Shown here piece by piece: positions 17,649 to 44,784 of a DNA stretch of 64,000 nt. The DNA comes from Trichosphaerium sp. ATCC 40318. Taxonomy: Eukaryota; Protista; Tubulinea. The first letter of the stretch is position 1. Every line of letters starts with the position of its first letter. The DNA lies in assembly GCA_038496445.1 (NCBI GenBank), contig JALMLS010000420.1:620001-684000 (forward strand), given 5' to 3'. The position numbers and the translations under genes were made by a program. The notes under the pieces are model-generated. The model saw only the letters and a program-made list of their open reading frames with translations. It made no database searches and was not told the DNA's origin.

Positions 17649-18657
17649 ATGACAACAAAAAAGGTACTTACAAAAGAGATAACATATTCGCCTCACAGAA
17701 GATTAAATAGATAAGCACCGAAAAAAGTGGCAAATCAGTCTATTGAAGCTTCCACTTGAGTTACAGCTTGAAATAGTTGATTTAGACGCTGAAGTGTATA
17801 TAAAGTGGCCATTATTATCAAAGAGTACTGCGAAGACAACAAGGTTTGACGATGAGTTAAGACCCCACGGCAAATGGTTGAAATATACAAAGTGTGTGGA
17901 CATAACATCGAATGAGAAGTCAATATACATTCGAAGAAAAATGCGTACTTTAAGAAATGGTTTACGTCATGGACAGTCCTTTGTGTGGCACAGCAATGGT
18001 CAAGTATGGAAACAAATCAATTTTGTCAATGATAACATGGAAGGAGAGTACAAGTGTTGGTATGATAATGGTACTCTTAAGATACAGTATATGTATAAAA
18101 ATGGTAAACAAGGAGAGTACAAGGTTTGGTATAGTAATGGTAAAATGAAGCTGAAGAGCAATTATGTTGATGGTAAACGACAAGGAGAGTACACAATGTG
18201 GTATGAAAATGGGCAAATGAAAGAACAAGGGACTTATGTTGATTCTAAGCTTGAAGGAGCTTCAAAAGGTTGGTATGGCAGTGGAGTATTACAAAAACAT
18301 ATTAATTGGGCAAATGGTAAACGAGAAGGTGAATACAAGTATTGGCACTCAAATGGTTTATTGGAAGTACAAGGCAATTATACCAATGATGAGCTTGACG
18401 GTGACTACAAAGTTTGGTACAACAACAGTGTGTTGCATCAACAAGCTTCTTTTGTGAATGGTGTACGAGAAGGGGAATTCAAGTATTGGCATAACAATGG
18501 CCAGTTGAGCGAGTCTTATCATTATGTAAATGATATACAAGAAGGAGAATACAAAAGATGGCATTACAATGGTATATTAATGGAGCAGTGCATTTTTAAA
18601 AATGGTGAGGTTGTGGAGACAAAGCGTTGGGATGAAGGTGGTACTTTAATACCATGA
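17649..18657 (+). CDS. F-box-like + MORN-variant (YwqK-type) repeat protein, copy 1
   Basis: 'LLKLPLELQLEIVDLDAEVYIKWPLLSK..A..TRFD..L..HGKW' followed by about 9 24-aa repeats GEYKxWYxNGxL. Tiny first exon MTTKK plus one intron; needs a 1-nt correction at about 17708. Confidence 0.85.
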
Positions 18658-18927
18658 AAGAATGTGAAATGACTTGCTGTTAAATAAAGCCCTCGTAGAA
18701 AATGTAACAACATGCAATGTTGGGTTCAAAACAAATGTCAAACTATTGAAATATGGACCCTTTAAAATGGATTGTAAGCTGTTTGCAATAAAAACGTAAT
18801 CACGTGATATTAACAAGTCATTAATAGAAGGACACGGATGCTAATAGTTCGTTTAAACAATTGGCAGCAGTTTTTCCAAAACTTACGTGACTTTTGCATT
18901 TAAGTCTATTTCGCGTCAATCTATCAA

Positions 18928-20991
18928 ATGGACGGTGTAAAGCTTGATGACGATGTTCAAGAGGAGCTACAAGCCGTTTTTGATGTGTATCCGGTACCTG
19001 TGACATCAATCGTGACAAATTTGTTGACGCCTGCGCCAGGAGATCACAAGAACGAAAGGTGGATTCTCTTGGACACCAGAGAGCCGATTAGAGGTTAATG
19101 TGTTGTTTTCGTATGAAATGTAGTTCAAACTGCATTTTACGTAATATTTATGTAGTATTACGCCTGAATACCCTTCCTCACCACCAATAATCACATTTTC
19201 CGTACCTCTTCAGCTAAAAGTTCCAGAAGAGCTTGAAATTCTACAAGATCGCATTAAACGCATAGTAAACTACTACAGACGCTTAAAGATTATTAATTAA
19301 CGCCTTTTTAGGCATCACAACGCTTCGCGGATGAACCAATGCTCTTTGAGCTTATGGATCTGATAATAGAAGAGCTAGAAGAAGTACGACACTATCCTCA
19401 ACAAAAAATGTTCCCATCTGGCAATCTAACACTCTAAGGTTGTTGTACCTTCTATGGGCTTAGGTTCTTTCTCTGTGCTATCAAATGAAATGATTGTAGA
19501 AGTGTTTAATTACTTACAACCTGCATGTTTAGGTAAAGACACGCAAACAGAATTAATCACGTGGCAATCACGTGATTCTTTTGTTTCAATCTTTTAGCAA
19601 CTTACCTATATTTCGTTTTGTAATACTCAATTAGCTACGATGAACTTGGTACACACTGTCTTGATGCCAATGGTACAATATCATCGCAAGTACGCTTTTA
19701 GGTTTGTTTATTAGATCGTAATTTCTTACAAACAGCTGGGAGAAGTTTTATGAAGAATTGGGCGATTGGAAAATCCAGAGAAGAAGACTAATACATCTGG
19801 ATCATCCAGGATATTTACGTGTTAATCGTGCAACACAATTATGGTTTAGGAATAAATACGGATTGATAAGTAAAACGAAGAAACTGTCTTTTTTCAACAA
19901 ATACAGTACACTACGTAGGTGTTTTTTGTTTATCATTGGGTGATATTTTACGTTCTCTTGTATGCTAACCTATTGGCTGTAGGTACATTAATGAACGAGA
20001 ACATAGTACGCCCTTATGTGGCCACTGTTACTACAAGAGATGGTGTTGATTGTGAATGGCCTACGGTACAGTTATAACTGGCTATTGATGACGGCAAGAA
20101 TGAGATACATTTATTTTATTTAGGACAAGCATTGGACATTTTATTTTCGTGCTGAGGTAAGACATTCAATTTCTCGAACTTTTCTCTTACTTTCAACTCA
20201 GGTTCAACGAAAACTTCCTTCGATACGTATGAAACCACACAAGTCTAAGTACGTATGTTTGAATGACTATATCAATAACCTTATAAAAATAAAGTGAGGG
20301 TACAAATACAGAGCGTGGTCAGGTGATGGAGGGTAAAAAGGTTGTGGGTTATTATAACTTTCATGGAATAGAACAAGGAAGACGTCTGTGCGTTTAAAGG
20401 GTACTTGTTCAAACCTGCTTACGTGTAACGTTATAGTTATATTCTCTCCCAAGTGAATCCAGGCATGGAACCTTGCTCGCCGTATAATAGATACGAGATT
20501 GGCGTTTTTGGGTTCGAATTTATAGATAAAACTAAGTGTAAGTTACACACTTCGCATTGTTTGCTAAACTAGTTACTTTCAGTGCGTTCATTTGCAAAAA
20601 AAGTTGCAGTAGTAGCCAGAGGAAGGTTTGGAAACTCAGAATCTATTAGTAATTTAGTATCAATGGGTTAGTTGCCAATGTTTTGATGTAATCGTATGTT
20701 TTTCTTATTATATTCTTGTAGCAAATATACGTATGAATATAACTTGGCGCCATGATAAAATAACAAAATTAAGATTACAACCGTACGTAAAGATACTCTT
20801 TTCTTCGTTCACTTTTTTCTTCTTTGCAGAAACATGTCATCAATAAAATTTTATGATGATTTTTCTTTCACAATTTTTTTTTAATATTGACTTGGTTTTT
20901 ACAGAGCTAGCGGTATAGAACTTTTAGCTGATCCTGATACAAATTGTGCTTACAATACTTCTTTAAAACATCACGTGGAGTTACGTCATAG
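18928..20991 (+). CDS. RWD-domain + F-box protein (multi-exon)
   Basis: 'DVQEELQAVFDVYP', 'ITPEYPSSPPII' and 'EPMLFELMDLI' (RWD), then 'GSFSVLSNEMIVEVFNYLQPACL' (F-box). Confidence 0.7.
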
Positions 20992-21405
20992 AGAGTCAAT
21001 GAGACGAACTGTAAGAAATTATACTCAAAACGAAAATGTAACAATCTTTTTTTGGGTTATGTGCACATCTTTCGTGCCGTAGCATTGCGACTAGCACTAA
21101 ATATATGGCTTGTAAAGATATAGCTGTGGTTTTTTTGTGTTTTACGAGGAGTTAACTTAAATATGACGTTACATGCGGAATAAGGATATAACCGACGCGA
21201 ATGGGGTTAAAGAGATTACATTGCGTGAGGAGTTCAAAACCAGTCAAACTGAATCTTTTTTGTTTTTCGGTGCGTTGAGAAGTGAAGTATACATAATGGC
21301 CACAGTACGTTTCAAGCGTAGCTGTCATAGGTATTAACAAACATAGCCCGACTCCGCGATTTTGGTAATACAGCGCGCTTATAGATGCCATTTGGCATTT
21401 AAGAG

Positions 21406-23320
21406 ATGGAAAGGATTAGGTACGCGTGTTTATCTTCGCTGTTCCGTATCTCCTGCTCAAAAATCGTAAAACCGACTGTACTACTTCTTGAACGCTCTCT
21501 AAACCAATGTAGTACGAAAACATGTCCATCGTACTTATATCGCACACGAGATACTTGCAACCGAAAAAACATACGCCAAAGACTTGGGCACACTCATCGA
21601 TGCACGTTTTAGATCTATTTGTTGATGTTACGACATACTAACGGCTTTTCATCGTTAGGTTTTCGAAGTACCTCTAGAACTATCTAAAATCCTCTCAAAA
21701 GATCAAATTGCATCTATTTTCGCCAATTTAAGCGATATTGCTGGTATTCATCATGTACGTGCTGAGAAAAAACCACTCTATTTTGAATCTCATTTTATTA
21801 TTAACATAACTTCTCAATCACGTGTCAACGAGTTTATAGCGTTTTTATTTTCTTCATTCTATTGAAAATATATTAGCTCAAGTTGATTGTCACTATAGTG
21901 CAATCTACGACATTTAACAATTTTTTTCTTTTACCAAGATTTTCAGCACTTGTTTTTGTTGTTTCTTACTATTTTTTCACAGGAGTTTGTTAGTACCATA
22001 TCAAAGACTATTGAAAACTGGGACTTTAAGCAATGTCTTGGTAAACACTTTTGCGATCTTGCAAAGAAACTAAAATGCTATGAGGTGCGTTCATACAAAT
22101 GACATTTCATGTTTTCTTTTTGGTTTTCTTGTTCGCTGTATTCCTGTAGCAGCGCGATAAAACGGTTTTCTAATCCTACCATGGGACGCCTTCATACAGT
22201 TCTATTTAATCACTGTGGGCTTGTAGTATTTGTCTATTGCTACAGTTACGGAAGGTGGATATACTCATTGTTTGGTTAGGTGTATGTCAATGACTATGCT
22301 GAGCGTATGGCACTCTTCCAAAAGCTTCAAAAAACGAACTCAAAGTTTAATTCCTTTATCGCTGTACGCTTACTGAAACAATCTTTGTTTATCAACTACT
22401 TATACTTTTGTGAATCAAGAAAGCAATGGACGACCCAAGATGCAACAATCATGATTTTTTCGATTTTGCAATTGAACCAGTCCAACGGTAAGTCATGTGA
22501 TTTTATATAATTGGTTAAAGTGTGACAACTAATATACCATAGTATACCTAGATATGTCATGCTTCTTGGTGTAAGCAAAGCCGTTTTTTTTGATGATTTT
22601 TGACTTTTTTTTTTAGGAATTGATTAAAAACACTCCTGAGCACCACCACGATCATAAGTTGCTTGTAGAGGCTAAAGAGAGTATGAAACTACTCTTAAAC
22701 TACTTTAATCAAAAGAAAAAAATGGAAGATGTACAGCAAATGAGCCGTACGAAGAGCACAGATATCAAGAACGAAATGGCCGGAAGAAAAGCTGAGGTTT
22801 GTCTTCTTTCTTTTTTTTATTAAACACTCCGATGTTTGGTTTGGACTTACTTGTAGCTTTGTAGACCTTTTTCAAATCAGAACATCTATACTTGCATGAG
22901 GGCTTTATCAGTCTTACAGATAATTGCTCTGAGCACCATAAGCACGAGCCTTGTTATGCGTTTTTATTCACTGATGCAATTCTTCTTGCGTCACCTCTTA
23001 GTTCCCAACCTTTGACAGGTTTTCTGAGACGTATGACAGGATATAAATTCAGTGTATTGCACGCTATCAGGTTGGATAAATTCACTGTTAATGGTACGTT
23101 CTATTGTGACAAGTCAAAACAAGATTTTTTGTTTCTTTCGTTGTAACACAGCATAGTTTGTGAGAACGGGTTTGAGCTCATTAAGAGAGATGGTAACCTG
23201 GCGTTCACTATACATGTTGAAAAGAAAGAAGAGCTTATAGATTGGACTAGACACTTGCGTACAAGAAGAAGTTCAATTGAAGAATTGAGAAAGCTAAAGG
23301 ATGCTGTTAAGAACCTTTGA
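21406..23320 (+). CDS. RhoGEF (DH-PH) protein
   Basis: 'IAHEILATEKTYAKDL', 'IFANLSDI', 'FAIEPVQR|IPRYVMLL|ELIKNTP' and PH 'LHEGFI...YAFLFTDAILLA'. The 5' end is uncertain. Confidence 0.88.
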
Positions 23321-23495: not shown

Positions 23496-24245
23496 CTACT
23501 TTATTTTTTTTTTGTTTATTTTTTCGTAGTACACAAGAACATTATTGTTATACTTTCTAAGTTCACATAGAATACCATCTTTGTTGTATTGTTTGTGTTC
23601 TCCATGAATGACACCATTAGAATAATCAATCTCAGTTAATAAAGGTCTTACACTATTAACAACACGTGCACCCCATCTTTGATACTTTCCATTAACATTG
23701 CCATCAACATAACTACACAGTACCTCTTGAGTACCATCTTTATACCATTTTTTATAAGTCCCATCAGCCTTGCCATGTTTATAAGTACATTCAAATGACA
23801 ATACACCATTTTGATGCCATTTCCTGCATAAACCCTGTCTTTCATCATTTATGTATGTACTTTCTTCTTTTAACTTTCCACTCTCCCACCATTGCTTGTA
23901 TGGTCCATTTTTAACACCGTTCATACAGTTGTAGTGATACTTCATGGTACCATTATTGTATGTTTCTTTGTATTCTTCTGTTGTTTCTGTGTAATAGTAC
24001 CAGAAAGAAGCGCCATTAGAATCCCAGTACATTTGTTCCTTTTCTTTGTTGTTTTCAAATGTTAGCTTAGCACATTTTCTGTTACCGTTGTATACAATGA
24101 ATACGCCGTGTTTATCTATATTTGAGTTGAATCTTGTTGTTGTAGCTGTTTGAAAGCAAAGTAGAGGCCATATAACATATACAAACCTATCTGTGTTCAA
24201 TATTAGATGTTGTAGTTCTAGCGGAAGCGAAGTTAGCCCCGACAT
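23496..24245 (-). CDS. F-box-like + MORN-variant repeat protein, copy 2
   Basis: Single ORF: 'LTSLPLELQHLILNTDRFVYVIWPLLC..TA..TRFN..I..HG' plus G.YK.W..NG repeats. Confidence 0.85.
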   Translation of the reverse strand: MSGLTSLPLELQHLILNTDRFVYVIWPLLCFQTATTTRFNSNIDKHGVFIVYNGNRKCAKLTFENNKEKEQMYWDSNGASFWYYYTETTEEYKETYNNGTMKYHYNCMNGVKNGPYKQWWESGKLKEESTYINDERQGLCRKWHQNGVLSFECTYKHGKADGTYKKWYKDGTQEVLCSYVDGNVNGKYQRWGARVVNSVRPLLTEIDYSNGVIHGEHKQYNKDGILCELRKYNNNVLVYYEKINKKKIK

Positions 24246-24327: not shown

Positions 24328-27000
24328 ATGTCCAACGTGAGCGAAGACGCTGAGGTACTAGCTTACAACGCTCTTACTTCTCCTCTAACGCTTGATAGGC
24401 TCTAGCTCCTCCAAAACGTCAAAAAATAAATGAAACAGATACAAATATACCTACAGAAGAGCTACTATCGTTTATAACGCATGCACGCATTTTCTTGGAG
24501 TCAAATAAGCGTTTCGTTGATTATGAGGTACCTGTCACGTTTCTTTGTGCTTTTGTAATTAAACTAAATTCATAGTCGGAAATAAGCGAGTTTGGTGATT
24601 GTGTCGGTTGGTTTAAAAAAATACAACAAACCTTACCGGCTTTGGAGCAGACACTTCAATTGCGTGTACGCATAACCATAAAACAAAGCCGGCATACTGT
24701 TTCAAACCACGTGGTTTTCACTGAAATCTAACTCTGCGTACAGATTATTAAAGAGTGTGGGTCAAAGCAAAACTATTTCGACGCAATTCCACTGGAAGTT
24801 CTTGCAATGATATTTGAGTATTTGACAAAATCTCAAACAAGGTTATTGGGTCACGTGTGTAGGTATTGGAAGGATGCATTACGATTGGTGTTTGGCCGAA
24901 TATTAGAATTTGACAAGTACGTTTACTAGTGCCAGCTGTGTTGCTCGAAAATGATTAATAAAATAGGTGTTGGGTAACTGATATGATGCTAATCGGTAAA
25001 GTCAAAAGGAGAGCTGATAGGCTGCAGACGCTTATGTATGTCTCAAAAAGGGTTCAACTTGTTCTTTACTATAATTGCACCTTGTTGTTAAAGCTGACTT
25101 AATGGTTTACCTCTAGTATTAATGAATGTGGATGGTTGGAGCCAGATTCAATTGTTAAGGCCATCAGTGAATGCAGTCAGCTTACCGAGTTGAACTTGAG
25201 TGGTGTTGATGCCAGAACATGGACGATTGGAAAAGTAGTTGATTTGTTCAAAGCGATTTCAAAACAAACGTCTCTCACTACCCTTGGGTGAGTTCCTTGT
25301 CAACTGTTAGTATCAGGGTATTATACCTTTCTAATACATTCACAAATCCTAGACTGCCCTCACGTAACAGAAAGGTTGCCTCAAAGCACTTTTCACTGTT
25401 AAAGTTACCTTTGTTGACAACACTTGAAGTCTTTGACTTTAATTTTGGGAATGTTTTTTCTAAAGTGCATTCATGCTTTCCAAGCCTTAAACATTTATCA
25501 GTAAATTCTGAATCATGTAGAAAGATAGACTATGGAAGTGACATTGTACCACTTAACTTGGAAGTACGTTCATACTTTCTATTTGGTTGTTTATTTATTG
25601 GCAGAGCTTCTGGTGTACTGGCACTTTAGCACCTGAGTGGAAGTGGAACACAATAATAAACGAGCAACTATGCACAAAATTATCAATATCAAATACAAAT
25701 GTTACTAAACTTGGAGACTTACCATGCCTCAGAGAGTTATTTGTTTACTATGATGATCTTGGTAGTACAAATGATTTTGATGCCAAAGTGTTAAGAAAGT
25801 TTCCTCATCTCATTCGCTTTAAGCTACATTCACGTACTTGTTGAAAATCACTATAATTCTATAAACATTGTCAAGCTTACATCATGATTTTTTTAGAGGA
25901 GGTTAATATAGATAAAGGCTCAGGTGTGGCTTTACCTAGCCTCTTTTTTACAATGTTCTCATTTGTGCTAATGCTTGGCTAGGACCTCTATGTTTGAATC
26001 TTGAAGCTTTGACACTTCGCATTAGGGGTAATCCGGTATCTCTTTTAAAACTGTAAGCCGAAGCACTTTCAGATAATGATTTGACAGCTACTACAGGCTT
26101 CCAAGTAGTTTGAAAGAAATAAATATTGAGTATTCAATACTTGAAATTGTAGATGACGAATCGAGGGAGTGCAATCGTCTTTTACAAGACAGATTTCAAA
26201 ACTTAAGGAAACTCAGGGTATTATATTGAGATTTTTATAGAGCTAACATATGACCTTTAGATTGTTGGATTGTTTGATTATCAACTTATTCCAAACAAAT
26301 ATCATGTGGCATTTCAAGGCTTATATGAACTTGACATAAACGCTTACACTGTTTCTTCAGAGTATTTACCCACGATTGCTGGTATGTAAAGAGTACTTTA
26401 TTGTTTTCTTAACCCATGAATTAGAGAATTGTAATTTGATCAACTTGAAGCTACACCTTTACAAAGATGGTGATGCTGTTAGAAATTTAGTGGTTTCAAT
26501 GACATCACTAAAAAAGCTTAACCTCAGATCATGCGCTTGTTCTCCATTTACAATGCCACACCCCTCAAAAAAGTTAGTCAAGTCCAACAAGTATTGGTCA
26601 GCTATTAATTTTATATTTAGTTTTCATACATTGATTGAACATGGATCAACTGTGAATGGTTTGATATGTACATAACATAATATTTCTCATTTTTTTCTAA
26701 TTTATCACTTGTAGTTCCAACAATTTCTTGCCTTGATGTCCACTTTTTATTGAAGGGTAGTCTAGATTTTATGATTGGATTTATTGAGAAATCTCCTTTA
26801 TTAGAAACTATTTACATACATGGATCAGCCCATGAATCGTACTTGGAACAATTGAAAATGTTAGTGTTTTATAACCTTTTTAACTCAATGCTGACTTTGG
26901 TATGTTGTGTAGGTACCTCAAAGTTACCAAAAGGAAGTTTAAATGTTATACAGATAGATGGCGTACTGCAGTTTGTGCTATACAGCCACAATTGGTTTAA
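24328..27000 (+). CDS. F-box/LRR protein, tandem paralog 1
   Basis: NLS-like 'APPKRQKI', F-box 'YFDAIPLEVLAMIFEYL..SQTRLLGHVCRYW' and many LxxLxLxx repeats on short exons. Confidence 0.85.
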
Positions 27001-27395
27001 AAACAGAAGAAAGTCATTGTTCTATTACAATCAGTTAAGCCTTTGACATCAATATGTAGCCAAAGTGAGGCAGTATTTGCAACCACTCAATCACGTAACA
27101 TATATTGAGACGATTGATACTGTACCACCAATACCACACTCTGTACCTGCCTCCTACTTGTCAATAAAACAGTAGCAAAGGCGGAGAGCAGTTCCTGCCC
27201 TTGATTGTCACATTAAACTAAAGGCTACTAACATCTGTTCAAGCCGTAACACTATATCAGCTGTCATAAACTTACTTTGCACTATTGCAAGGTATCAAGA
27301 TCAAGGGCTAATCGTAGCTACTGCTGTTGAACACGTGTTTTAAGTGAGTATGTTGGTAAGGCGTTGTTGAAGTAAAAGCAATTATTACGAAGACA

Positions 27396-30050
27396 ATGGC
27401 CAATGAGAGCGAACGCTGTGAGGTATAGGATACTTGTCTTACGCTCCTAACGCTTGATAGACTCTAGCGCCTCCAAAACGACAGAAAATACACAAAACAG
27501 ATACAAATATACCTACAGAAGAGCTACTATCGTTTATAACGCATGCACACAGTTTTTTGGAGGCAAACGAGCGTTTCGTTGATTATGAGGTACCTGTCAC
27601 GTTTCTTTGTGCTTTTGTAATTAAACTAAATTCATAGTCGGAAATAAGCGAGTTTGGTGATTGTGTCGGTTGGTTTAGAAAAATACAACAAACCTTACCC
27701 GCTCTGGAACAGAAACTTCAATTGCGTGTACGTCACATAAATAAAAACTTCATTACGCACATTGTACAATTTTTTTTAGTGCACGTGTTTTTGCAAAAAA
27801 ATATAACCAGCTTGAGACATTCCTGTTGTTAACGTTTGGTAGATCGTTAAAGAGTGCGGGTCAAAGCAGAACTATTTTGATGGAATACCATTGGAAATTC
27901 TTGCAATGATATTTGAGTATTTGACGAAATCTCAAAGAAGGTTATTGGGTCACGTGTGTAGGTATTGGAAGGATGCATTACGATTGGTGTTTGGCAGGAT
28001 ATTGGAATTTGACAAGTACGTTTCAATCTGTGCCTTATATTGATTAACCATAACAGTTGTTGGTTAACAGATATGATGCTAATCGGTAAAGTCAAGAGGC
28101 GAGCTGATAAGCTACGGACACTCAGGTATGTCAACAGTTTTAATACTGTTTAGTTAAAACTGACTTGAATGGTTTAATTCTAGTATTAATGGCTGTGGAT
28201 GGTTGGAACCAGATTCAATTGTTAAGGCCATCAGTGAATGCAATCAGCTTACCGAGTTGAACTTGAGTGGTGTTGATGCTAGAACATGGAAGATTGAAAA
28301 AGTAGTTGATTTATTCAAAGCGATTTCAAAACAAACGTCTCTCACTACCCTTGGGTGAGTTCCTCGTCAACTTTTAGTATCAGGGTATTATACCTTTCTA
28401 ATACATTCACAAATCCTAGACTACCTTCACGTAATAGAAAGGTGTCCCCAATATATTTTTCACTGATGAAGTTACCTTTGTTGACAACACTTGAAGTCTT
28501 TGACTTTAATTTTGGGAATGTTTTTTCTAAAGTGCATTCATGCTTTCCAAGCCTTAAACATTTATTTGTAAATTCTGAATCATGTAGAAAGATAGAATAT
28601 GGAAGTGACATTGTACCACTTAACTTGGAAGTACGTTCATACTTTCTATTTGGTTGTTGCAACTTGTCTAAAGTATTTTAGAGCTTCTGGTGTACTGACA
28701 AGTTAGAAGCTACATGGAAGTGGAACACAATAATAAATGAGAAACTATGCACAAAGTTATCAATATCAATTGCAAATGTTACCAAACTTGGAGACTTACC
28801 ATGCCTCAGAGAATTATTCGTTTATAATCTTCGCAGAGGAACTAATTTTGATATCAAAATATTAAGAAAGTTTCCTCATCTCACTCGCTTGAGGATATAT
28901 TCACCACGTACTTTTTAGAAAACTTCACCAGTCATAAAATAAACAGTAATCTTACATTGACTATTGTCTTAGAGGTGCTAAATAAAGATAAAAGCTCAGG
29001 TGCAGCATGTGTTAATTATACTTTGTCATAAAAGCTATTTCATTTGTTAATGCTTGGTAGTTCCTCTTTGTTTGAATCTTGAAGCTTTGACACTTTGTAT
29101 TGATGTTAATACAGTATCTCTTTTAAAACTGTAAGCCGAAGCACTTTCAGATAATGATTTGACAGCTATTACAGGCTTCCAAGTAGTTTGAAAGAATTAG
29201 ATATTCAGCATATACATGAGGAATCAGAGGAGTGTGACCGTGTTTTACAAGACAGATTTCAAAGCTTAAGAAAACTTAGGGTGCCATATTGGATTTTTAC
29301 AGACCTATTGCGCTAGATTAGTGGACCATGGAACTATACTCAGGTGCCAAACAAATATCAAGGATTATGTGATCTCAACATAAGCGCTTGTACTGTTTCT
29401 TCAAAGTATTTACCCACAATTGCTGGTATGTAAAGAGTACTTTATTGTTTTCTTAACCCATGAATTAGAGAATTGTAATTTGATCAACTTGACGCTACAC
29501 TTTTACAAAGATGGTGATGCTGTTAGAAATTTAGTGGTTTCAATGACATCACTAAAAAAGCTTAACCTCAGATCATGCGCTTGTTCTCCATTTACAATGC
29601 CACACCCCTCAAAAAAGTTAGTCAAGTCCAACAAGTATTGATCAGCTATTAATTTTATATTTAGTTTTCATACATTGATCACACATGGATCAACAAAGGC
29701 TGATGTGAATGGTTTGATATGTACATAACATAATATTTTCTCATTTTTTTCTAATTTATCACCTGTAGTTCCAACAATTTCTTGCCTTGGCGTAAACTCT
29801 TCAAAGAGTAGCCTGGATTTTGTAACAGGATTTATTCCAAAATACCCTTTATTAGAAACTATTTACATACGTGGATTAGACCATGAATCGTACTTGGAAC
29901 AATTGAAAATGTTAGTTTTTTTCCATTTTTTTCATTATGTCTTACACACTGATGTGTAGGTATCTCAAAGTTAACAAAAGAAAGTTTAAATGTTTTACAA
30001 ATAGACGGTGTACTGCAGTTTGTACCATACAGCCAAAATCGTTCACCTAA
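27396..30050 (+). CDS. F-box/LRR protein, tandem paralog 2
   Basis: Same exon structure and high nucleotide identity to paralog 1; F-box 'YFDGIPLEILAMIFEYL'. Confidence 0.85.
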
Positions 30051-30503
30051 CAATTGCTTCAAAGGCAGCCAATAAATGTTCAACTTGTGTAGGTTTTTTT
30101 TTCAAAGTCATGTATTTCTGGCATTGAAAAGGAAATTTTTGGTGGCATGGGTGATTGCTGCTCGCCATGTAGTTTATAAGCTTTGTAGGTTGTTGTTGTT
30201 GATTTATACGAAGTCAACTGACGTTTACCCAAACGTCTGTAACGGAGTAAAACACGTGTACAGCCATAAAAATGACCGGTAGCTTGGGAAGTCAAAAAAC
30301 CAGAAAATGAGCGATTGATTTAAGTCCCCGAGACAAGCATCCAAAACGGTTGTACCAATCTACACTAACAATCGATCATACAAGACTTGGGCTTGACATT
30401 TGAGTTGAGCAACAGTTGTTGTAATTGTTTGAAGGAAAGAAATCACGTGTTAAGCGAGAAGACGTGGTAATATTGATTGAGGAAGCGATACTGAGTAAAA
30501 ATA

Positions 30504-33325
30504 ATGTCCAATGCAAGCGAAAACGCTGATGTACCATAGCTAATAACTCTCTTACGCCTCCTCTAACGCTTGATAGACTCTAGCTCCTCCAAAACGTCAA
30601 AAAATAAATGAAACAGATAAAAACATACCAACAGAAGAGCTACTATCGTTTGTAACGCGAATGAACAGTTTCTTGGAGTCGAATAAGCGTTTCATTAATG
30701 CCAAGGTACCCGTGTCATTCTACACTTAAATGTATTAACTTGTAACCAACAGCCGGATATAAGCGATTATGGCGATTGTGCAAAGTATGTCAGTTGGTTT
30801 AGGAAAATACAGCAAACATTACCGGATCTAGAACAGGACCTTCAATTACGTGTACGTTTGAATAACTTTTTTTTATCAAGAAGTAGTCACGTGTGTTTTG
30901 CCAAAAACCGTACTAAAAACTGTAATGAGAGTTTGTGTTTCTGCTGACAAACGTATTATAGTACTTTGTTATTTGTTGCTGTTGCCAATAGCGGCACGTG
31001 TACCGCAACCAGTTTTGTGAACCTTTTCTGTTTGTCTAGTTGTTCTTTAAAACCTTTCGTTCAGATTGTTACAGAAGACAAGTTAAAGAAGAACTGTTTT
31101 GATGACATACCATTGGAAGTCCTGGCAACGATTTTTGAGCACTTGACGAAATCTCAAAGGAAACTATTGGGTCACGTGTGTAGGATTTGGGGAGATACTT
31201 TACGATTGGCATTTGGTAGACAATTAGAATTCGATAAGTACGTCTAACAACTCACCAATTGCTGTGCCTTATACTGATTAACCATAACAGTTGTTGGTTA
31301 ACAGACATGATGCTAATCGGTAAAGTCAAGAGGCGAGCCGATAGGCTACTGACACTCACGTAACCATTATTTGTTCAATACTATTGTTGTTCTTTCTAAT
31401 GTTGAATGTGCCTTAGTATCAACGGATGTGGATGGCTAAGGCCAAGTTCAATTGTTAAGGCTATCAGTGAATGCAATCAGCTCACCGAGTTGAACTTGAA
31501 TGGTGTTGATGCCAGAAAGTGGAAGATTGGTGGGATAGTTGATTTATTCAAAGTGATATCAAAACAAACGTCTCTCACTACCCTTGGGTAAGCATCCATA
31601 TGGGCGTACCACACTTCTCTAACACAATTATAAATCCTAGAATGCCATCACATAACAGAAAGATGGCGTCAAAGCACTTCTCACTGTTGAAGCTGCCTTC
31701 ATTGACAACACTTGATATTGCCAACTTTAATTTCACAAATGCTGTCTCCAAAGTGCCTTTATGCTTTCCAGACCTTAAGCATTTAACATTAAATCCCAAA
31801 TTATGTCAGACGCTTGAATATCTACCCACTGTGATAGAATCACTCAATCTAGAGGTTTGCCTTATTTATTCTTAACATTTGTGACTTTGTTTTCAAGAGT
31901 TTTGTGTGTAATGACTGGGTGAACCTCAAGTGGAAGTGGAATGCAATGATAAATGAACAACATTGTAGAAGACTATCAATATCGATTTTAGACATTGCAA
32001 AATTAGGAGATCTGCCATCACTCAGAGAGTTAACTATTTATCGTGATCGTGACTTTGAGAATTTTTCTCTTGCTGTGTTAGATTTGAAGATTTTAAGACG
32101 CTTTCCAAATCTTACTCACCTAGACATTGATGCACACCGTAATAACAAAAACCTACAATTGGGTGTTCAATGAGCTTACTTTTTCTACTTAGGAATGGTT
32201 AATACTGATGATAACAGCTCAAGTAAGTTGTTTTTTAATAGTTCTGACTTTTTTTAAGTCTCTTGTAGTACCTTTTAGTCTGAATCTTGAATGTTTGACT
32301 GTTAACCTTGGTTGTAATCCACTGCTGTTATTAAAATTGTACATTAGTACCATGAGAAAAGTTGTATTGATAGGTTTTTTTTTGTTAAGGCTTTCGAGTG
32401 GTTTAAAAGAGTTGAATATAGACTATTGTTCCCAAGATGGCGATGCTGAAGCAGATGAGTGTAGTTGCATTATACGACAAAAATTTCAAAGCCTAAGAAA
32501 ACTCAAGGTGTGAAAATTTGAGGTACTATTACCTATACTTAATAGTATATGTAGATTATGAGCCTTTATAGAATACAGAAATATCACGTTAATCTTCAAA
32601 CATTATGTGATCTTGACATATCTCAGAATGCTGTTTCTGCAAATCATTTTCCTGTGATTGCTGGTAAGTACAGTTTATGACTCTTGTTTTACTTTGATTT
32701 TTTAGAACATTGCAATTTGATTAACTTGACACTACGCTGTTATTCTTGTGGCTATTCTGGAATATGTCTTATGAAAAACTTAATAATGTCCATGACATCA
32801 TTACAAAAGCTACATCTACATCACAGCTGTGTAACCTTTAAAGAGCCACACCCTTCAAAAAAGTAAGACACTTTTGTTGAGCTGTATCAACCTTTTTGTA
32901 CTAACACTTGGGGTTTTTATGTAGCTTTAACAAGTTTATCTTACTGGCAAATGTATACGATTACAATGTAGATTCTTTTAATTGTACAAAACTGTTCTTT
33001 TCTTTCTCTTTTTCTTATTCTGGTACTTAAGTTCCAACCGTCTCCTGCCTTGAAATGGATCTTTCTGTATATAAGTTGGATGCCATAACTAGATTTATTG
33101 AAAGATCACCGTTATTGGAAACTATTCATATACATGGAGTACAACAACCAGTGTTGGAGCACTTGAAAAAGTACCTTTGATTTTTTGGTTTTGAAAACAA
33201 CTTACACAGTTTTAAAATACTGACACATTTGTTCAAGGTATTACAAAAAACTGGAAAGAAACACAATATGCTTTTCAGACACGAAAAGCTCAGTTTGTGT
33301 AATCCAACCTAGCACAAAATTATAG
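30504..33325 (+). CDS. F-box/LRR protein, tandem paralog 3 (more diverged)
   Basis: 'CFDDIPLEVLATIFEHLTKSQRKLLGHVCRIW' and collinear LRR exons. Confidence 0.85.
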
Positions 33326-33476: not shown

Positions 33477-34169
33477 TCAGTGTTTGTAATCTCCTACTAG
33501 TTTATCATTTACAAAACAGCATTTCTCTAACAAATAGCCATTGCTATGCCACCTTTTATACTCTCCATCGTACTTACCATTGAGATAAAAACAATGCTCA
33601 CTTAAGAGCCCATTTATATACCACCTCTTACTCTCACCATTACGTTTACCATCAATTAACATATCATGAGTCTCCAATTGCCCATTTTCGTACCAAGCCA
33701 TGTACTCTCCGTTTTGCACTCCTTTGATGTAATGACTTTTTCCCATCAATAAACCATTACTATGATATCTCTTGAACTCTCCTTCTAATCTACCCTCAAC
33801 ATAAACACATGATTTCTCCAATGTGCCATTGTCATGCCAACATCTATACTCGCCATGTAGCTGTCCACTTTTCCAGTATGCACAACAAATTACAATCCTC
33901 TTTATAGGAAGCCTGGTACATCGATAATATCGAAAATATCGCGATTTACGATGTTTGTGTGTTATAACAAGCTTGTAGCAAATCCATTTGCGATGTTTTC
34001 TCAACTCGCTATCAAACCTTGTCGATGTAGCAGTATGTTTAGATAATAGCGGCCATTTTAAATACACTTCAACGTCTATATCAATGATATCAAGATGTAT
34101 CTCCAGCGGGAGCTGTAAAATATAGGAAAACGGCCCAACAGATGTACCTGTGCTCATGTGCTTTTTCAC
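33477..34169 (-). CDS. F-box-like + MORN-variant repeat protein, copy 3 (apparently nonsense-truncated)
   Basis: 'ILQLPLEIHLDIIDIDVEVYLKWPLLSKHTATSTRFDSELRKH' plus repeats; TGA falls where the repeat Trp is expected. Confidence 0.85.
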   Translation of the reverse strand: MKKHMSTGTSVGPFSYILQLPLEIHLDIIDIDVEVYLKWPLLSKHTATSTRFDSELRKHRKWICYKLVITHKHRKSRYFRYYRCTRLPIKRIVICCAYWKSGQLHGEYRCWHDNGTLEKSCVYVEGRLEGEFKRYHSNGLLMGKSHYIKGVQNGEYMAWYENGQLETHDMLIDGKRNGESKRWYINGLLSEHCFYLNGKYDGEYKRWHSNGYLLEKCCFVNDKLVGDYKH

Positions 34170-37341: not shown

Positions 37342-38356
37342 ATGAATGAAAACAAGGTATCAGACCGTTCAATTCAAGCTCAAAAATAACTAACTACTAG
37401 AAACTTAAAGAAGAACAAGAAGAATGCCATCTATTAAACCTTCTTCCAGTTGAGATTCAGCTTGATATTATCGACTTGGACTTGTCACTGTATTATAAGT
37501 GGCCTCTCCTTTCAAAACAGGCAGCAATGAACACAAGGTATGATTGTGACATGAATAAGCATGGAAAATGGCTTCGAAGAATCAACAACCTTATTGTACA
37601 GCAAGAGTGCTGGATACATGGTCTACAAGATGGAGAGTACAAATATTGGTACTACAATGGTCAATTAAAAAGCCAGTTTAACTGCATCAATGGCAAACAA
37701 GCAGGGGAATACAAGGATTGGTATGAGAACAGTCAATTGATGAGGCAGTGTAAGTACATCAATGGAAAACGAGAAGGAGAATACAAGATGTGGTATGCGA
37801 CTGGGATATTGATGAGGCAGTGTAATTATATCAATGGCAAACAAGTAGGGGAATACAAGGATTGGTATGAGAACAGTCAATTGATGAGGCAGTGTAAGTA
37901 CATCAATGGAAAACGAGAAGGAGAATACAAGGCATGGTGTTTCAATGGCCAATTGATGGTGCTGTGCAAATATGTCAATGGTAAACGAGAAGGAGAATAC
38001 AGGGTATTGTGGAACAACGGCAAATTGATGGAGAGGTGCAAATATGTCAATGGAAAACGAGAAGGAGAATACAAGAAGTGGTATAAGTATAGCCCATTAC
38101 AGATGATTCACAAGAAAAACCATTTGATGATCCAGTGTAATTACATCAATGGCAAAAAAGAAGGAGAATACAAGAAGTGGTATGAGTATGGCGCAATACA
38201 GAAGCGTGTGTTTACATCAATGGCAAAAAAGCAGGAGACTACAAAAAGTGGTATGAGAATGGTCAATTAATGGAGTGGTACGAGTGTGTCAATGACCAAC
38301 AAGAAGGATACCACAAGAAGTGGTATTACAATGCAGGATTAATGGGTGAACAATAG
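37342..38356 (+). CDS. F-box-like + MORN-variant repeat protein, copy 4 (frameshift near 38205)
   Basis: MNENK|KLKEEQEECHLLNLLPVEIQLDIIDLDLSLYYKWPLLSKQAAMNTRYD...HGKW with highly homogeneous repeats; two further repeats continue in another frame to TAG at 38356. Confidence 0.85.
37686..37930 (+). repeat. Near-identical internal tandem duplication, 144-nt period (two MORN units)
   Basis: 'atcaatggcaaacaag(c/t)aggggaatacaaggattggtatgagaacagtcaattgatgaggcagtgtaagtacatcaatggaaaacgagaaggagaatacaag' at 37686 and 37830. Confidence 0.9.
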
Positions 38357-38529
38357 AGAAAGCCATCGATCGACAAATACCACATGTGATTTATTGCTTC
38401 AAAAGGTATTCACCATGTCATCAGCAACGCTTTTTTCGAACTATCATGCTTCAATAAAGGTTACCTATTTGTACTGTACAATGTGTTTTATTAAGAGACA
38501 TCCATGAACGTCTTTTAGGGGTTTTTTTA

Positions 38530-40264: not shown

Positions 40265-40272
40265 TTTCGCGC
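40265..40272 (+). promoter_or_regulatory. E2F consensus site TTTCGCGC in the ESS2/E2F divergent promoter
   Basis: Exact TTTSSCGC match about 100 nt upstream of the E2F ATG. Confidence 0.5.
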
Positions 40273-40368
40273 GTTGTATTCAAATTTTCAAACGCTAAAA
40301 CTCTACGTACACGCTTGCATACGAATCTACGCCTTGTGTAGACGCAAATTACACAAAAATACAAAAAA

Positions 40369-42004
40369 ATGGCAGCGCACAAGGAAGGGTTACTTTATTT
40401 ACAAACGACACAATCGTATACGCCATTGGTAGCAGATCAGTATGTGTTAAACAAGCTTACCGGCAAAACTATCCGAAAGCAGACGATCTCCCAATTGTGC
40501 TGTCCCACAGTGGATCCGGCTTCTGTAGAAGCAATTGTTCTTCCAGAGGCAAAAGCTATTAAATCTGAACCAACAGAGACAGTTCCAAAGTACACTAAGA
40601 CCGTGCGCAACAAAGAAAACGTAAATCGAGGCAACGTGGCTGTCCGCGCACCTACAAAAAAACCCAAGGTACTTCAACTAGTTAGCTAGCCTCTCCGTTT
40701 ACGCCACGTAGAAAGTGCGAGAACGACGCTCGCAAACAGTATCTGGTCGTGTAAAAAAAACTCCAGTGAGAAAACGCACGTTTAACACTGATTCTTATGT
40801 ATCTAACTTGCTATAGCCACTGGCAGTAGAAAAGATAATTCCCTTGGCGCATTGACAAAGAAATTTATGGCTATGGTGCGTAAATAGCTTTTTTCTTTTT
40901 TGAATCTTAAATACATCCGAGTGCTCTGTAGTATACAGACTCTTAACGCTCTGTGCGCACGTACAAAATATATCCAAGAAGATTTTTTTTTGAATAAACA
41001 GAGTTTTAGCGCCATTTCTTCTAAAATCGTTCTGACGTGTTTTTTAAAGGTTGAAAGCTCAAAGGGAGGATCTCTTGACCTTAATATTGTATCAAAAGAA
41101 TTATCAGTTCAAAAAAGAAGATTGTACGATGTCACTGGTGTCTTGGAAGGTATAGGATTGCTTGAAAAACGCTCCAAAAATCATATTCAATGGAAGTACG
41201 TAACTTTTGTCCACATCCTGTTGATTTCTGGGTATTCACAAATTTTTTTTAGAGGCGGTCTACAACCTGCTAATGCACAAGATACCACTCAATTGAGTGG
41301 TATTCGAGATGAAATTCAAGCGCTTAAGAGCCGTGAACAAGAATTAGATAAACTCGTTAGTGAACGACAGAATGGATTAAAAGGATTGGTTTCACAGGGT
41401 TCACTGTTTTCTTACGTATCTCATGATGATATCCGTAACATGCCTGGTATGGAAGATCAAACGATAATTGCTGTGAAGGCTCCTACAGGGACACGCCTGG
41501 AGGTACCTGATCCAGATGAGGTATGTGTTTGCTCCATTTTTTCTGTCTTTTGCATCCGAGTAGCGGTCATTCTGGAATTCGTGTTTTCTTTGAACCTACT
41601 GGCGTTGCTGTGACTTCTTTGTTTTCTTTCATGCTTACTTTGATTGTATAGGATATGACACATGGTCGGCGACGATATCAAATTTTTCTTAAGAGCGATG
41701 GCCCAATTGATGTCTACTTGGTTTCTAAATTCGATCCTCAAGTTGCTGTACGCGTCTATCTTTTGATTAGTGGTAGTTTAATGGCTTATTAAATTGTTGT
41801 TTAGGAACCGTCAATATACGCACCAGAGACACAGTTACCAGTTAAACCGCCAGTTGACGCTGCTGATATTGATGCTTATCTTAATCTTTACACAAACGAT
41901 ATGGAGTTATCGGAACTGGGTATGTGGTTGCTACTTGTAGCTTTGCTGGTTCATTCAATGACGTACTTACTCGTGTTGTAGGCGTTACAGATTTCTACAA
42001 GTGA
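40369..42004 (+). CDS. E2F: E2F transcription factor
   Basis: '[14 protein letters not shown]', '[28 protein letters not shown]', coiled coil, '[17 protein letters not shown]' and marked box '[16 protein letters not shown]'. Confidence 0.93.
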
Positions 42005-42237
42005 TCAGTTATCAGTAATTTTAAGCTTACCTCTTGTCACGATTTTCTAAAAGAGGTTACGTGAAGATTGATACTTATAAACAGTTTTTGCGCGTTGTAC
42101 AAAAAAAAAAAAGGAATTGTAAATAAATAGTAATGAATTAATTAATTAACCTCGTTGTGTGGTTCGTTTGGGTGGTGTCTAAGTGAGAGCGGTTTTTTTT
42201 GTTAAGTCAGTTTGTGAAAAGGTGCTGGACTGAGGCA

Positions 42238-43285
42238 ATGCGAAAGGTGCTTGCGACTGATCGTATGTACATACGTTTTAGGCGTTATTAATTTGTTTTA
42301 GGTTTATCAGAACCTTTGAATTACCCAAGCAGGTTCAAACACCATTTTTTGGTTCCTGGTTACTTTTTCTAATGTTTTAACGCATTATTAGTGCCTTTAT
42401 CTCTAGATTATCGCATGAAGAGCTTACAAATACTTCCAACGCTCCGAAGCGATCGTTGGATGAAATAAAAGACCATTTAGCAACTGAAGAAATAAAATTA
42501 GAGCACGTTGATCGAATTTTGATTTAAACGCTTATGGATCTACTAGAACCGTTCGTGGCATGATTTTGAAGCAATTGCACTCTGTACAAGTACTCTACAA
42601 ACTAGTTACAGTTTAAGTTACTCACTGTCAATCAAGGTTGAGGAGAAAACATTCATTAAGCTTCTAACAACTATACGTAACGAAGCATCTTCCGTACACA
42701 ACTATCGTGTTTTTCATGACCTAAACGTTTTACAGCAAGGCCGATACGCGAAGCCTACTACCACTCAAATACCAGTAACGTCTACCAATCAAATAGCAGT
42801 AACGCAAACTCCTGAACCATCAGGTTATAACCCTTATGATGAAGATATGGGTCGTGAAGAAGATGAAGAAGATGATGATGATTATTCTTCTGATGGAGAC
42901 GCGACGGAGAGGTTTCTTAATAGTATGTTGTAATACAACAAAAGTGGTATTAATTATACTCTCTAAGAGCATAGAGGTAAGCTTGAAGGAAATAAACCTA
43001 AAGGAGATAAACTTGAAGTACACAAAGGAGATAAGATTGTTGAAGATAAGAAGAAAGGAGATAAGCTTGATGGAGACAAGCAGCATGGAAATAAGGTTGA
43101 ACCCGATGATGAGCCTGAAGAAGAAGATGATGAAGAAGAGGACAGTGACGATGAAATGAGTGCTGTACGTATTTACATAAACATAATCCAATTTCTAAAC
43201 TTTTTAATTCAAGATTCTCAACAAGTACAAAGGAAATGACTCGGATGAAGATATGCTGGACATGGCAGATGATTATTATATGTAA
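42238..43285 (+). CDS. Hypothetical protein with very acidic (D/E-rich) C-terminal half
   Basis: Spliced frame MRKVLATDRLSEPLNYPSRLSHEELT...LETVRGMILKQLHS, with a long E/D tract at 42840-43260. Confidence 0.6.
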
Positions 43286-43446
43286 AGAGAAACAAAGAGT
43301 TTGTGAATTAACAAGAAACCAAATAAAACAAAAAAACTGTATTTTTAAACAAAAACTTCACTAACTAAAATTTTTTTTTTATTTGAGTTTTCTATCAACA
43401 CAACGCACAGTCTATATAAGCTTCCTATTTAAAATCATCAAAATTG

Positions 43447-44784
43447 TCACTGGGATAATGGTGCTTCTTCTTTCTTTATAGCCTTACTCTTAAGTGTACC
43501 ATCAGCGTTCCACTCTGAAACATCACCAACATCGTCATCATTTAGTTTTGTACAAGACTTAGCCAACTGTCCATTCAAATGCCACTCTTTATACGAACCA
43601 TTCTTTTTACCTTTATCCCAGTAACAATGCATATACAACTGTCCAGTGTTATACCACTGTTTATACTCACCATGATAAAGACCATTTATATTAATAGCTT
43701 TAACATGAAGTTGACCGTTTAAATGCCATTCCTCATACGGTCCATTATCTTTACCGTTATTCATAGTAGTCCTCATAAAAATCTGACCGGATCTATGCCA
43801 TTGTTGATAAGATCCGTGTTCAACTCCATTAATTTTATTACTATGAATGAACATTTGTCCATTATCATGCCATTGCTTAAACTCTCCGTGTTTCTTACCT
43901 TCCTTAAAAGTACAATCAACATGAAGCTCACCATTCTTATGCCATTGTTTAAAAATGCCATGTTTCTCTCCTTTAACATATGTACACTCCATACAAACTT
44001 GTCCGTTTGAATGCCATTGTAAAAACTTACCTTCGTGAAGATCATTTTTTTTAGTACACAAGATATGCTGTTGACCGTTCTTATACCACTCTTTATACTC
44101 ACCTTCATCTTTACCATTAGTAACCATAACATTTATAAACAACTGTCCGTTATTATGCCATTGTCTATACTCACCATTCTCGACACCATCATTCTTAAAA
44201 CTTTGAATAAAAAGTTGTCCATTTTCATGCCATTGCTTAAACTCACCGTGTTTCTTGCCTTTTCTCTTTGTACAAAGAACATGTAGTTGTCCTGTATAAT
44301 ACCATTGTTTATACTCTCCTTCAGTTACACCATTCTCATTATAACAAGAAATATAAAGTTGTCCGTTTTTGTGCCATTCTTTGAACTCTCCGTGTCTTAC
44401 GCCTTTTTTAAAGTTTCTTGATGTTTTTTTAGCTCCGTTCGCATACCACGTCAACCAAGCGCCATGTTTGCGAAGGTTGACGTCATAGTGCGTAGCTTTA
44501 GCAGCCTTAGCGGACAGGCAATGCCATTTAGCGAAAATTTCCGCGTTGAAACCGCAAATTTCTGTTTGAAGCTCGAAAGGAAGTTCCAGTACGTGTGCGG
44601 TGCTTTTCGACGCATTACGAGTGTCTAAAAGTAAGAGTGAGCTTAAAACAGTTGAATCGTTAAAATATGATCTGTTTAAAGCCTGTTGGCGTTGGGTATC
44701 GTTCAGGATAATCGCTGATCGCGTAATTTTGTAAAAAACAAAATGGCGCTAATTGTACTTACACTCTTTTTTGGGTTCGCCCAT
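43447..44784 (-). CDS. F-box-like + MORN-variant repeat protein, copy 5 (longest, about 13 repeats)
   Basis: First exon MGEPKKE plus one intron, then 'VLELPFELQTEICGFNAEIFAKWHCLSAKAAKATHYDVNLRKHGAW' in frame with the 335-aa repeat ORF. Confidence 0.88.

Follow-up and report, generated by a model that had tools for sequence, protein, structure and literature searches.

How did five related genes, each joining a short helical head to an array of repeats, come to lie in a single window of 64,000 nucleotides (the whole stretch of Trichosphaerium sp. DNA analysed here), and what might their products do? The reading preferred here, to which we give a probability of roughly 0.6, is that they belong to one very large lineage-specific Trichosphaerium family, which combines an F-box-like, SCF-recruiting head with a target-binding MORN_2 array and has grown by duplication inside the genome. 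An earlier note on this DNA had proposed a horizontally acquired or retroposed repeat module, coupled to an SCF adaptor and expanded as a diversifying repertoire.

Five genes of common architecture

The five open reading frames described in the earlier note are all present, on the strands and at the coordinates given there, and their parts are as follows.

17649..18657, + strand: g1, gene, recognized by its open reading frame, MORN_2 match, splice model and full-length AF2 model (pLDDT 92)
17649-17663, 17664-17715, 17716-18657, + strand: g1 splice model, with exon 1, intron (tentative, AAG acceptor) and exon 2
17749..17850, + strand: g1 F-box-like domain, LP to TRFD, 34 aa, placed by alignments, model helices and predicted Skp1 interface
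17971..18654, + strand: g1 MORN_2 array, nine units of 24 aa
23496..24245, - strand: g2, gene, one exon, the most divergent of the five copies
24126-24227, - strand: g2 F-box-like part, with MORN_2 units downward from 23906
33477..34157, - strand: g3, gene, ATG at 34157
34011-34112, - strand: g3 F-box-like part, with MORN_2 units at 33480-33854
37342..38270, + strand: g4, gene, exon 1 37342-37356, exon 2 37401-38270
37357-37400, + strand: g4 intron, 44 nt, GT..AG, phase 0
37443-37544, + strand: g4 F-box-like part, with MORN_2 units at 37632-38267
43447..44784, - strand: g5, gene, subfamily-B-like, ATG at 44784 followed by a short first exon and one intron
44482-44583, - strand: g5 F-box-like part, with 14 MORN_2 units at 43450-44463

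A family HMM built from copies across the genome matches only these five genes when the window is searched in six frames (E 1e-24 to 2e-32), a result far beyond chance. The genes stand singly, as had been claimed: those that intervene are unrelated and include canonical F-box/LRR exons at 24.3–33.3 kb. The N-terminal signature said to unite the five also aligns over about 40 aa, in which L, P, E, I, W, L, A, T and H never vary.

The repeats are indeed a MORN variant, all five genes scoring above the gathering cut-off (29.6 bits) of Pfam MORN_2 PF07661, with 38.8–114.3 bits and E 5e-10 to 1.6e-34. Their period is 24 aa and the clear units number 9, 4, 5, 7 and 14 from g1 to g5; the variable count reported earlier is thus upheld, its range of about 5–13 becoming 4–14. 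The g4 array contains an internal duplication of two units. Transcript-like contigs, whose RNA status is a guess, cover g4 at 37510-38400, and a 144-nt 'joint' in them was rejected as an intron, its length being that of two repeat units. The units recur in the periodic form GxxxxW/YxxNG, and a logo of 439 of them displays a fixed scaffold (G1, W6, N9-G10, L12, G21), with positions 5, 13, 14, 16, 17 and 23 varying freely. In the full-length AF2 model (pLDDT 92.3) the N-terminal helices are followed by an array of hairpins with pLDDT above 95, which matches the structures of MORN1 and junctophilin at E 1e-8; radial-spoke proteins are also among the fold matches. At the sequence level, phmmer of the array against the PDB returned no match, and NCBIfam yielded only a sub-threshold match to the LIC20035 adhesin, which amounts to repeat similarity.

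The claim of at most one 5' intron per gene holds. No in-frame ATG precedes the LP in g1, g4 and g5, which require a first exon of 15–22 nt and a short intron, and g2 and g3 can be single-exon genes; the splice site of g5 is ambiguous, three models being possible. The described contrast with intron-rich neighbours agrees with the genome statistics given by Tekle et al. 2023 (PMC10521059): exons averaging 154 bp and 8.7 introns per gene.

A family of hundreds of genes under purifying selection

The repertoire extends far beyond the window. Exact subfamily motif patterns occur 293 times in the genome against 2 in the control, and 132 times against 0; one shortened pattern is an undercount, because Arg is often encoded by AGR. 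A profile of the N-domain gave 1,358 first-look candidates, and the 150 that were scored all had E<1e-23. The g5 N-domain gave 1,157, of which 150 were scored (E<3e-12), nearly all at other sites than in the first set. By these profile and motif counts the family comprises at least about 425 genes and possibly over 1,000, with variable numbers of repeats; the expanded repertoire envisaged from five copies is therefore real.

The manner of growth can be read from the 5' ends. A short exon and an intron about 13 codons before the LP are needed in 32 of 56 copies, and splicing is confirmed by a transcript (P0003) that is 99% identical to one genomic copy from residue 5 onward. Retroposition, one of the two origins suggested for the repeat module, is ruled out because the copies have inherited this conserved exon and intron. 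Spread by a mobile element is likewise unsupported: in copies at 80–85% identity the similarity breaks off some 125 bp before the ORF and again where the ORF ends, with no common flanks further upstream and no shared terminal repeats seen in the loci compared. Growth probably proceeded by DNA-level gene duplication inside the genome, with the 5' exon and intron retained, repeat units gained and lost, and birth and death of copies still in progress.

Selection acts on both parts of the protein. The dN/dS ratio is about 0.23–0.36 in the head and about 0.34–0.49 in the array (0.2–0.5 overall): the family is under purifying selection, and the head is more strongly constrained. Within the repeat unit the per-position ratio is 0 at G1, W6 and G10, compared with about 1 for positions 5, 13 and 16. 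The diversifying selection that had been postulated is not demonstrated, as the mean lies below 1 in both parts and even these three positions have a ratio of only about 1.

These data also bear on the suggestion that the amplification is largely non-functional or selfish, driven by an unrecognized mobile element or by segmental duplication, with most copies decaying. Among 300 scored copies, 45 sit in open frames of <150 aa, some with stops, and a fraction of the family may thus consist of dead genes; furthermore, several groups of copies are 95–98.6% identical across whole 3-kb loci. These near-identical loci may, however, be uncollapsed haplotigs. Complete transcripts, dN/dS ratios well below 1 in head and array, and the abrupt end of similarity without common terminal repeats make this suggestion very improbable.

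A divergent head predicted to dock on Skp1

Was the earlier note right to see an F-box in the N-terminus? Sequence comparison gives little more than its first helix. The Pfam F-box profiles PF00646 and PF12937 match none of the five N-termini and none of 51 members at E<=10, and a PDB profile search with the head produced a single chance match (E 1.3). Alignment by hhalign with 11 canonical F-boxes that this genome encodes covers the LPxE..I of helix 1 only (probability 29%, P 6e-4). In the alignment of 51 sequences the helix-1 motif LPxE(I/L)xxxI is present, with P invariant, I in at least 90% and E the majority residue; in helix 3, LSK is retained, but an invariant Ala takes the place of the Trp in the canonical (V/L)(C/S)KxW. 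As no F-box profile recognizes it, the head is described as F-box-like and not as a demonstrable Pfam member.

Structure prediction is more favourable. A module of three helices (13-22, 24-32/33 and 35-40/41) appears in AF2 models of both the isolated domain and the full-length protein, with pLDDT 77–87 in the latter. For the isolated domain the model, at pLDDT 61, is too weak for Foldseek and VIA-align to have given a usable structural match. Complex prediction of the N-domain with the Trichosphaerium Skp1 (P0188) attained an ipSAE of 0.66 in three runs, compared with 0.01 for the best control; solved complexes pass the mark set for this tool in 51 of 78 cases and mismatched pairs in 2 of 108. 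Such a score measures how confident the model is in its own prediction, and F-box–Skp1 complexes already known to the model may have shaped it. At least 80% of contacts agree between the runs, the partner having pLDDT 61, and the predicted interface joins Skp1 residues 106-165, the canonical H5-H8 surface, to partner residues 6-38. P12, I19, L33, S34, K35 and A38, invariant or nearly so in the 51 sequences, all fall inside it. The head thus most likely docks, as far as modelling can tell, on helices H5-H8 at the C-terminal end of the amoeba's Skp1. What endures of the F-box claim and of the proposed coupling to an SCF adaptor is a three-helix module that behaves like an F-box in silico; recognition by a sequence profile does not.

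A different interpretation would make these proteins MORN-type scaffolds that tether to membranes or cytoskeleton, the N-terminal helices serving as a family-specific cap, dimerization or targeting element and the F-box likeness being limited to LPxE(I/L). The failure of every profile beyond helix 1 fits this view, and so does the array's structural resemblance to MORN1, junctophilin and radial-spoke proteins. It is countered by the docking score, with conserved residues in the interface, by the stronger constraint on the head than on the array, and by P0127, a protein found elsewhere in which a canonical Pfam F-box-like domain occupies the same position ahead of MORN_2. On balance the scaffold interpretation seems unlikely.

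Under the preferred reading of a ubiquitin-ligase family, the divergent head of about 40 aa would plug into Skp1 H5-H8 and recruit the SCF (Skp1-cullin) ubiquitin ligase, while the C-terminal array of MORN_2 beta-hairpins, in which the 24-aa units number from 4 to about 30, would offer a surface for binding targets, its scaffold held fixed as the six variable positions change freely. The family members are, on this modelled docking, probably target receptors of the ligase. If the head does recruit Skp1, a few per cent of the genes of an amoeba with a 70-Mb genome would constitute a single class of ubiquitin-ligase receptors, endowed with a MORN_2 recognition domain and with an F-box variant overlooked by standard annotation. 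The analysis provides a testable pair, the N-domain and P0188, and a profile with which the family can be annotated.

Lineage-specific expansions of SCF F-box receptors are known, for instance in plant F-box families and among nematode F-box genes. The Trichosphaerium family resembles these in having an N-terminal head, here predicted to dock on Skp1, variable C-terminal repeats, hundreds of dispersed or clustered paralogs, birth-and-death turnover, and a constrained head beside a freer recognition domain. It differs in its head, which no F-box profile detects, whose H1-H2 loop is shorter and which carries Ala at the helix-3 Trp position; in a recognition domain made of MORN_2 where the others use LRR, WD40, Kelch or FBA; and in its copy number, which is very large considering that the genome measures 70 Mb. 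The ANK/PRANC proteins of poxviruses bear a C-terminal, divergent or truncated F-box-like domain that binds Skp1 and accompanies ankyrin repeats. A short helical head, poorly seen by F-box profiles and fused to repeats, is common to both groups, with Skp1 binding predicted in the amoeba; the Trichosphaerium head is N-terminal, however, and paired with MORN_2.

Giant viruses and the origin of the repeats

Tekle et al. 2023 list 1,568–1,581 gene models with viral best matches, mostly with 0–2 introns, and read them as transferred viral genes; F-box and MORN are the commonest domains among these approximately 1,570 "giant-virus LGT" models (PMC10521059). That article carries no description of the fusion, of the expansion of a single family or of a link to Skp1, and it appears to have counted members of the present family as giant-virus gene transfers. 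On that account there would have been many separate acquisitions, each copy or small group deriving from Mimiviridae-like viruses. Apart from the published tallies, it can draw on a structure search of BFVD, in which giant-virus MORN proteins are the best matches (E 1e-22 to 1e-12, 15–37% identity), and on virus-like contigs that bear arrays of MORN_2 paralogs.

The head speaks against this account. Viral look-alikes exist only for the MORN_2 array, and the N-terminal modules of the virus-like contigs examined differ from the Trichosphaerium head. Among 1.84 billion representative proteins the N-domain has 55 matches; of the 20 inspected, each is an MMETSP transcript, a short JGI contig or a eukaryote-like ENA contig, with no viral sequence among them. 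A scan of IMG/VR with the N-domain found no relative. Outside the genome, it was found in the collections searched only in Trichosphaerium transcripts and in one other eukaryote-like metagenome, the ENA assembly ERZ25072490 with a GC of 0.47. All copies share this derived head, many share the position of the 5' intron, and those in the window stand singly between intron-rich host genes. Nor do the five genes look like integrated giant-virus DNA, their GC of 0.34–0.38 showing no deviation from the 0.377 of the window. The MORN region itself lacks discriminating power: in BLAST rankings outside proteins stand above about half of the family members, so that no reliance can be placed here on best-hit 'alien index' calls, and such rankings were discarded as evidence of monophyly or of a donor. 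Repeated viral transfer is accordingly judged highly unlikely. The MORN_2 module as such may plausibly have arrived by horizontal transfer.

Low-information repeats draw viral and bacterial best matches, and the roughly 1,570 genes reported as derived from giant viruses should be looked at again with this in mind: a large share of them probably represents one host family expanded in place. A bolder version, which we regard as unlikely, sees an SCF repertoire of many hundreds of receptors whose MORN_2 surfaces would follow rapidly evolving targets, for example proteins of giant viruses or of bacteria, the reported 'unprecedented gene trafficking from giant viruses' being largely the expansion of one host family. 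Were it true, any exchange could have run from host to virus, and the amoeba would possess an innate-immunity-like system on a repeat fold otherwise unused by F-box receptors. The antiviral or antitoxin-like role that the earlier note held possible is speculative.

MORN/F-box proteins of giant viruses (Marseillevirus, Orpheovirus, Pithovirus, Klosneuvirinae bins) have the same MORN_2-type hairpin array, whereas the Trichosphaerium head is found in no viral sequence searched; a further shared trait is the canonical fusion of an F-box-like domain with MORN_2 in P0127, which adjoins a DUF1796 gene. Bacterial YwqK-family 'antitoxin'/COG2849 proteins share the MORN_2 repeat family and its period, with 25–47% identity over the arrays. 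They are without an F-box-like head, whereas the Trichosphaerium genes are spliced and eukaryotic and, unlike members of YwqJK operons, are flanked by spliced eukaryotic genes such as F-box/LRR. The term 'antitoxin' is simply the annotation name borne by MORN_2 relatives.

Five fusion genes in the window

Five paralogous genes, g1–g5, reside in the window, each joining an F-box-like head, an N-terminal signature of ∼40 residues starting with LP, to a C-terminal array of 24-residue units that exceeds the gathering score of Pfam MORN_2 (PF07661).

Features of the window (exon-2 coordinates for g1–g5)
17716-18654, + strand: g1, long open reading frame, 9 clear MORN_2 units
23499-24245, - strand: g2, long open reading frame, 4 clear MORN_2 units
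24328-33325: multi-exon F-box/LRR genes between g2 and g3, e.g. open reading frame 30966-31247 (+ strand), with canonical F-box DIPLEVLATIFEHL...VCRIW
33480-34157, - strand: g3, long open reading frame, 5 clear MORN_2 units
37401-38267, + strand: g4, long open reading frame, 7 clear MORN_2 units
43450-44622, - strand: g5, long open reading frame, 14 clear MORN_2 units

In a six-frame translation of the window the family HMM retrieves exactly these five genes and no sixth member. Their aligned N-termini display invariant L, P, E, I, W, L, A, T and H, and the 24-residue register is strict across the five. The earlier note's description of five paralogs at these places and strands, sharing an N-terminal signature followed by a variable number of repeats (4–14 clear units), is confirmed. 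Their GC content (0.34–0.38) equals that of the window (0.377). The observation that each gene has at most one 5′ intron also holds: as no in-frame ATG precedes the LP motif in g1, g4 and g5, these three require a first exon of 15–22 nt and one short intron, and g2 and g3 may be read as single exons. The splice model is clean for g4 (ATG at 37342, 44-nt GT..AG intron), depends on an AAG acceptor in g1 and can take three forms in g5.

The F-box/LRR genes between g2 and g3 are a separate, intron-rich F-box family. Canonical F-boxes are also extremely numerous in this genome, as PF12937 yields 1,809 first-look candidates, with all 150 scored lying above the cut-off. An ordinary neighbour gene at 40900-41613 (+ strand) carries, by eye only, an E2F/DP-type winged-helix signature, RRLYDV..VLEGIGL.

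The head and its predicted docking to Skp1

The head had been proposed to be an F-box. None of the 51 members in the genome-wide alignment gives a Pfam F-box match at E ≤ 10, a profile search of PDB sequences with the head returns no match, and in an hhalign comparison with 11 canonical PF12937 F-boxes from the same genome only the LPxE..I helix aligns (probability 29%, P 6e-4). Threading by eye onto the F-box would imply a loop one residue shorter, LSK for VCK and Ala for the helix-3 Trp. On the other side, AF2 predicts three helices (residues 13–22, 24–32 and 35–41); the pLDDT is a weak 61 for the isolated domain, for which no structural match was found, and 77–87 inside the full-length model (mean pLDDT 92.3, pTM 0.80). 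Most telling in silico is the structure prediction with Skp1 that the earlier note advised: with the amoeba's own Skp1 the head attains an ipSAE of 0.66 in three of three runs, against 0.00–0.01 for three controls, a pass that may stem from the model's memory of solved F-box–Skp1 complexes and denotes likeness, not binding. The score mark is attained in 51 out of 78 solved complexes, compared with 2 out of 108 mismatched pairs. At least 80% of contacts are common to the runs (partner pLDDT 61), which connect Skp1 residues 106–165, corresponding to H5–H8 by alignment A4, used to place the Skp1 helices, with partner residues 6–38. P12, I19, L33, S34, K35 and A38, invariant or nearly so in the family, all fall within this predicted interface. 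The head is not an F-box by sequence profiles, but is F-box-like by predicted structure and docking.

The genome contains approximately four Skp1 loci (L031 at G000:C137:78201-81344, L032 and L033/L034), and of the Skp1 paralogs at least three have transcripts (P0188, P0191 and P0193). The gene on contig C137 has three exons, with one junction falling within helix H5, and a genomic Skp1 exon is 100% identical to the MMETSP transcript P0188. One further protein, P0127, encoded on an unrelated contig beside a DUF1796 gene, carries a canonical Pfam F-box-like domain ahead of MORN_2 repeats, so that the architecture is not unique in principle. The best reading, with a probability of roughly 0.6, is an expanded receptor family that is probably SCF-linked, and the earlier interpretation is borne out in part; the antiviral role raised there would be speculative.

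Expansion, duplication and selection

A genome-wide count with an N-terminal HMM, advocated in the earlier note, lifts the family far above five: the five-sequence profile yields 1,358 first-look candidates (E<1e-23 in 150 of 150 scored). The g5 N-domain alone yields 1,157, of which 150 were scored (E<3e-12), almost all at places different from those of the five-sequence profile. The copies form two subfamilies, A (LPVEIQLDIIDLD..VY.KWPLLSK.AA.NTRYD) and B (IPCELQTYICTFN.EVFTKFHTLSKRAAINTHFD). Exact DNA patterns, one signature per subfamily, are found at 293 and 132 places (controls: 2 and 0, respectively), and therefore at least ∼425 loci exist. The true copy number is probably between several hundred and more than 1,000; counts are probably somewhat inflated by haplotigs or very recent segmental duplicates retained in the assembly, as copies with 95–98.6% identity are alike across whole 3-kb loci. 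Near-identical groups on different contigs, matching over the full 3 kb, include loci L016/L017, L018/L019/L021, L025-L027 and L055/L056. Copies are both single and locally clustered (e.g. contigs C46, C78 and C115). The longest open frames extend to 842 aa; in 45 of 300 scored matches the frame is shorter than 150 aa, and stops occur in a few, which suggests birth and death of copies.

Retroposition of the module, as had been proposed, is rejected because a short 5′ exon and intron recur among copies, and this inherited intron favours duplication at the DNA level. The short first exon is required in 32 of 56 copies, the recurrent subfamily A model comprising a first exon of 15–33 nt, an intron of 44–60 nt and an acceptor ∼13 codons before LP. 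The family transcript P0003, 99% identical to a genomic copy, aligns with it only from residue 5, as expected if the first residues sit on an upstream exon. At 80–85% identity, similarity is limited to the open reading frame plus ∼125 bp upstream; the flanks show no element ends in common. Within g4 (37632-38267) two units are perfectly duplicated (joint 37702/37847); precisely these 144 nt are missing from one public-run contig, which reflects either polymorphism in unit number or assembly collapse.

The array is modelled as a continuous beta-hairpin sheet (pLDDT above 95), the closest structures being MORN1 of Toxoplasma, Plasmodium and Trypanosoma (E ∼1e-8), junctophilins and radial-spoke MORN proteins. 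A logo of 439 units shows G1, W6 and G10 as fixed, E2, K4, N9, Q11, L12, G21 and K22 as strongly preferred, and positions 3, 5, 8, 13, 14, 16, 17, 23 and 24 as variable. The diversifying selection envisaged earlier does not emerge from dN/dS and pN/pS values, which are crude counts and not site models: over 148 paralog pairs the median dN/dS of the head is 0.23 and that of the array 0.34, with array values of 0.3–0.57 in the closest pairs. Across 12 independent pairs, pN/pS is 0 at G1 and W6, 0.02 at G10, 0.8–0.9 at positions 14, 17 and 23 and only ∼1.0 at 5, 13 and 16 (pooled: array 0.49, head 0.36). The array is a constrained scaffold bearing near-neutral surface positions.

Origin of the parts

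In size and GC the genome (70.3 Mb here) fits the published Trichosphaerium sp. draft, which spans 70.87 Mb at 37.69% GC and has 8.7 introns per gene, its exons averaging 154 bp (PMC10521059). Tekle et al. 2023 assigned 1,568–1,581 gene models to 'giant virus origin', mostly from Harvfovirus, Hyperionvirus, Klosneuvirinae and Tupanvirus, with F-box and MORN as the commonest domains; their tables place such models, with 0–2 introns, beside others named YwqK antitoxin (PMC10521059). Their account covers neither the fusion and shared head nor the link to Skp1 or the expansion of a single family (PMC10521059), and a literature search found no paper on an F-box–MORN_2 receptor family. Much of that published class probably corresponds to the present family.

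Relatives of the array are many: unnamed metagenome proteins and bacterial YwqK-family antitoxin proteins (25–47% identity), and, in BFVD, many giant-virus MORN proteins, from Marseillevirus, Pithovirus, Orpheovirus, Hyperionvirus and Harvfovirus (E 1e-22 to 1e-12), whose likeness to the family lies in the array. About half of the family's members score below the best proteins from outside it, so array similarity alone cannot place the family. One of the best sequence matches lies on contig L081 (GCA_013565555.1, GC 0.32), which carries at 5757-14858 a virus-like tandem series of intronless MORN_2 paralogs, all reading in the same direction; they share an N-terminal module, MKFIDHNSPEKA...YMDMWISSIVEGYIYE, that differs from the Trichosphaerium head. 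Horizontal transfer is thus a plausible source of the repeat module, whichever the donor and the direction.

Among 1.84 billion cluster representatives the N-domain profile matches just 55 proteins, and IMG/VR holds no relative. The 20 matches checked comprise 15 MMETSP transcripts, three proteins on 1-kb JGI contigs and two on ENA contigs, with no viral sequence among them. Two N-domain matches occur in the protein database, one labelled Trichosphaerium sp. ATCC 40318, MMETSP0405. Both ENA matches (L079 and L080, contig GC 0.47) derive from one sample (assembly ERZ25072490) and fuse the same F-box-like head to MORN_2. Their contigs carry MCM, Rpb6 and Exo70 fragments and thus look like another eukaryote, so that the family may predate the sequenced strain.
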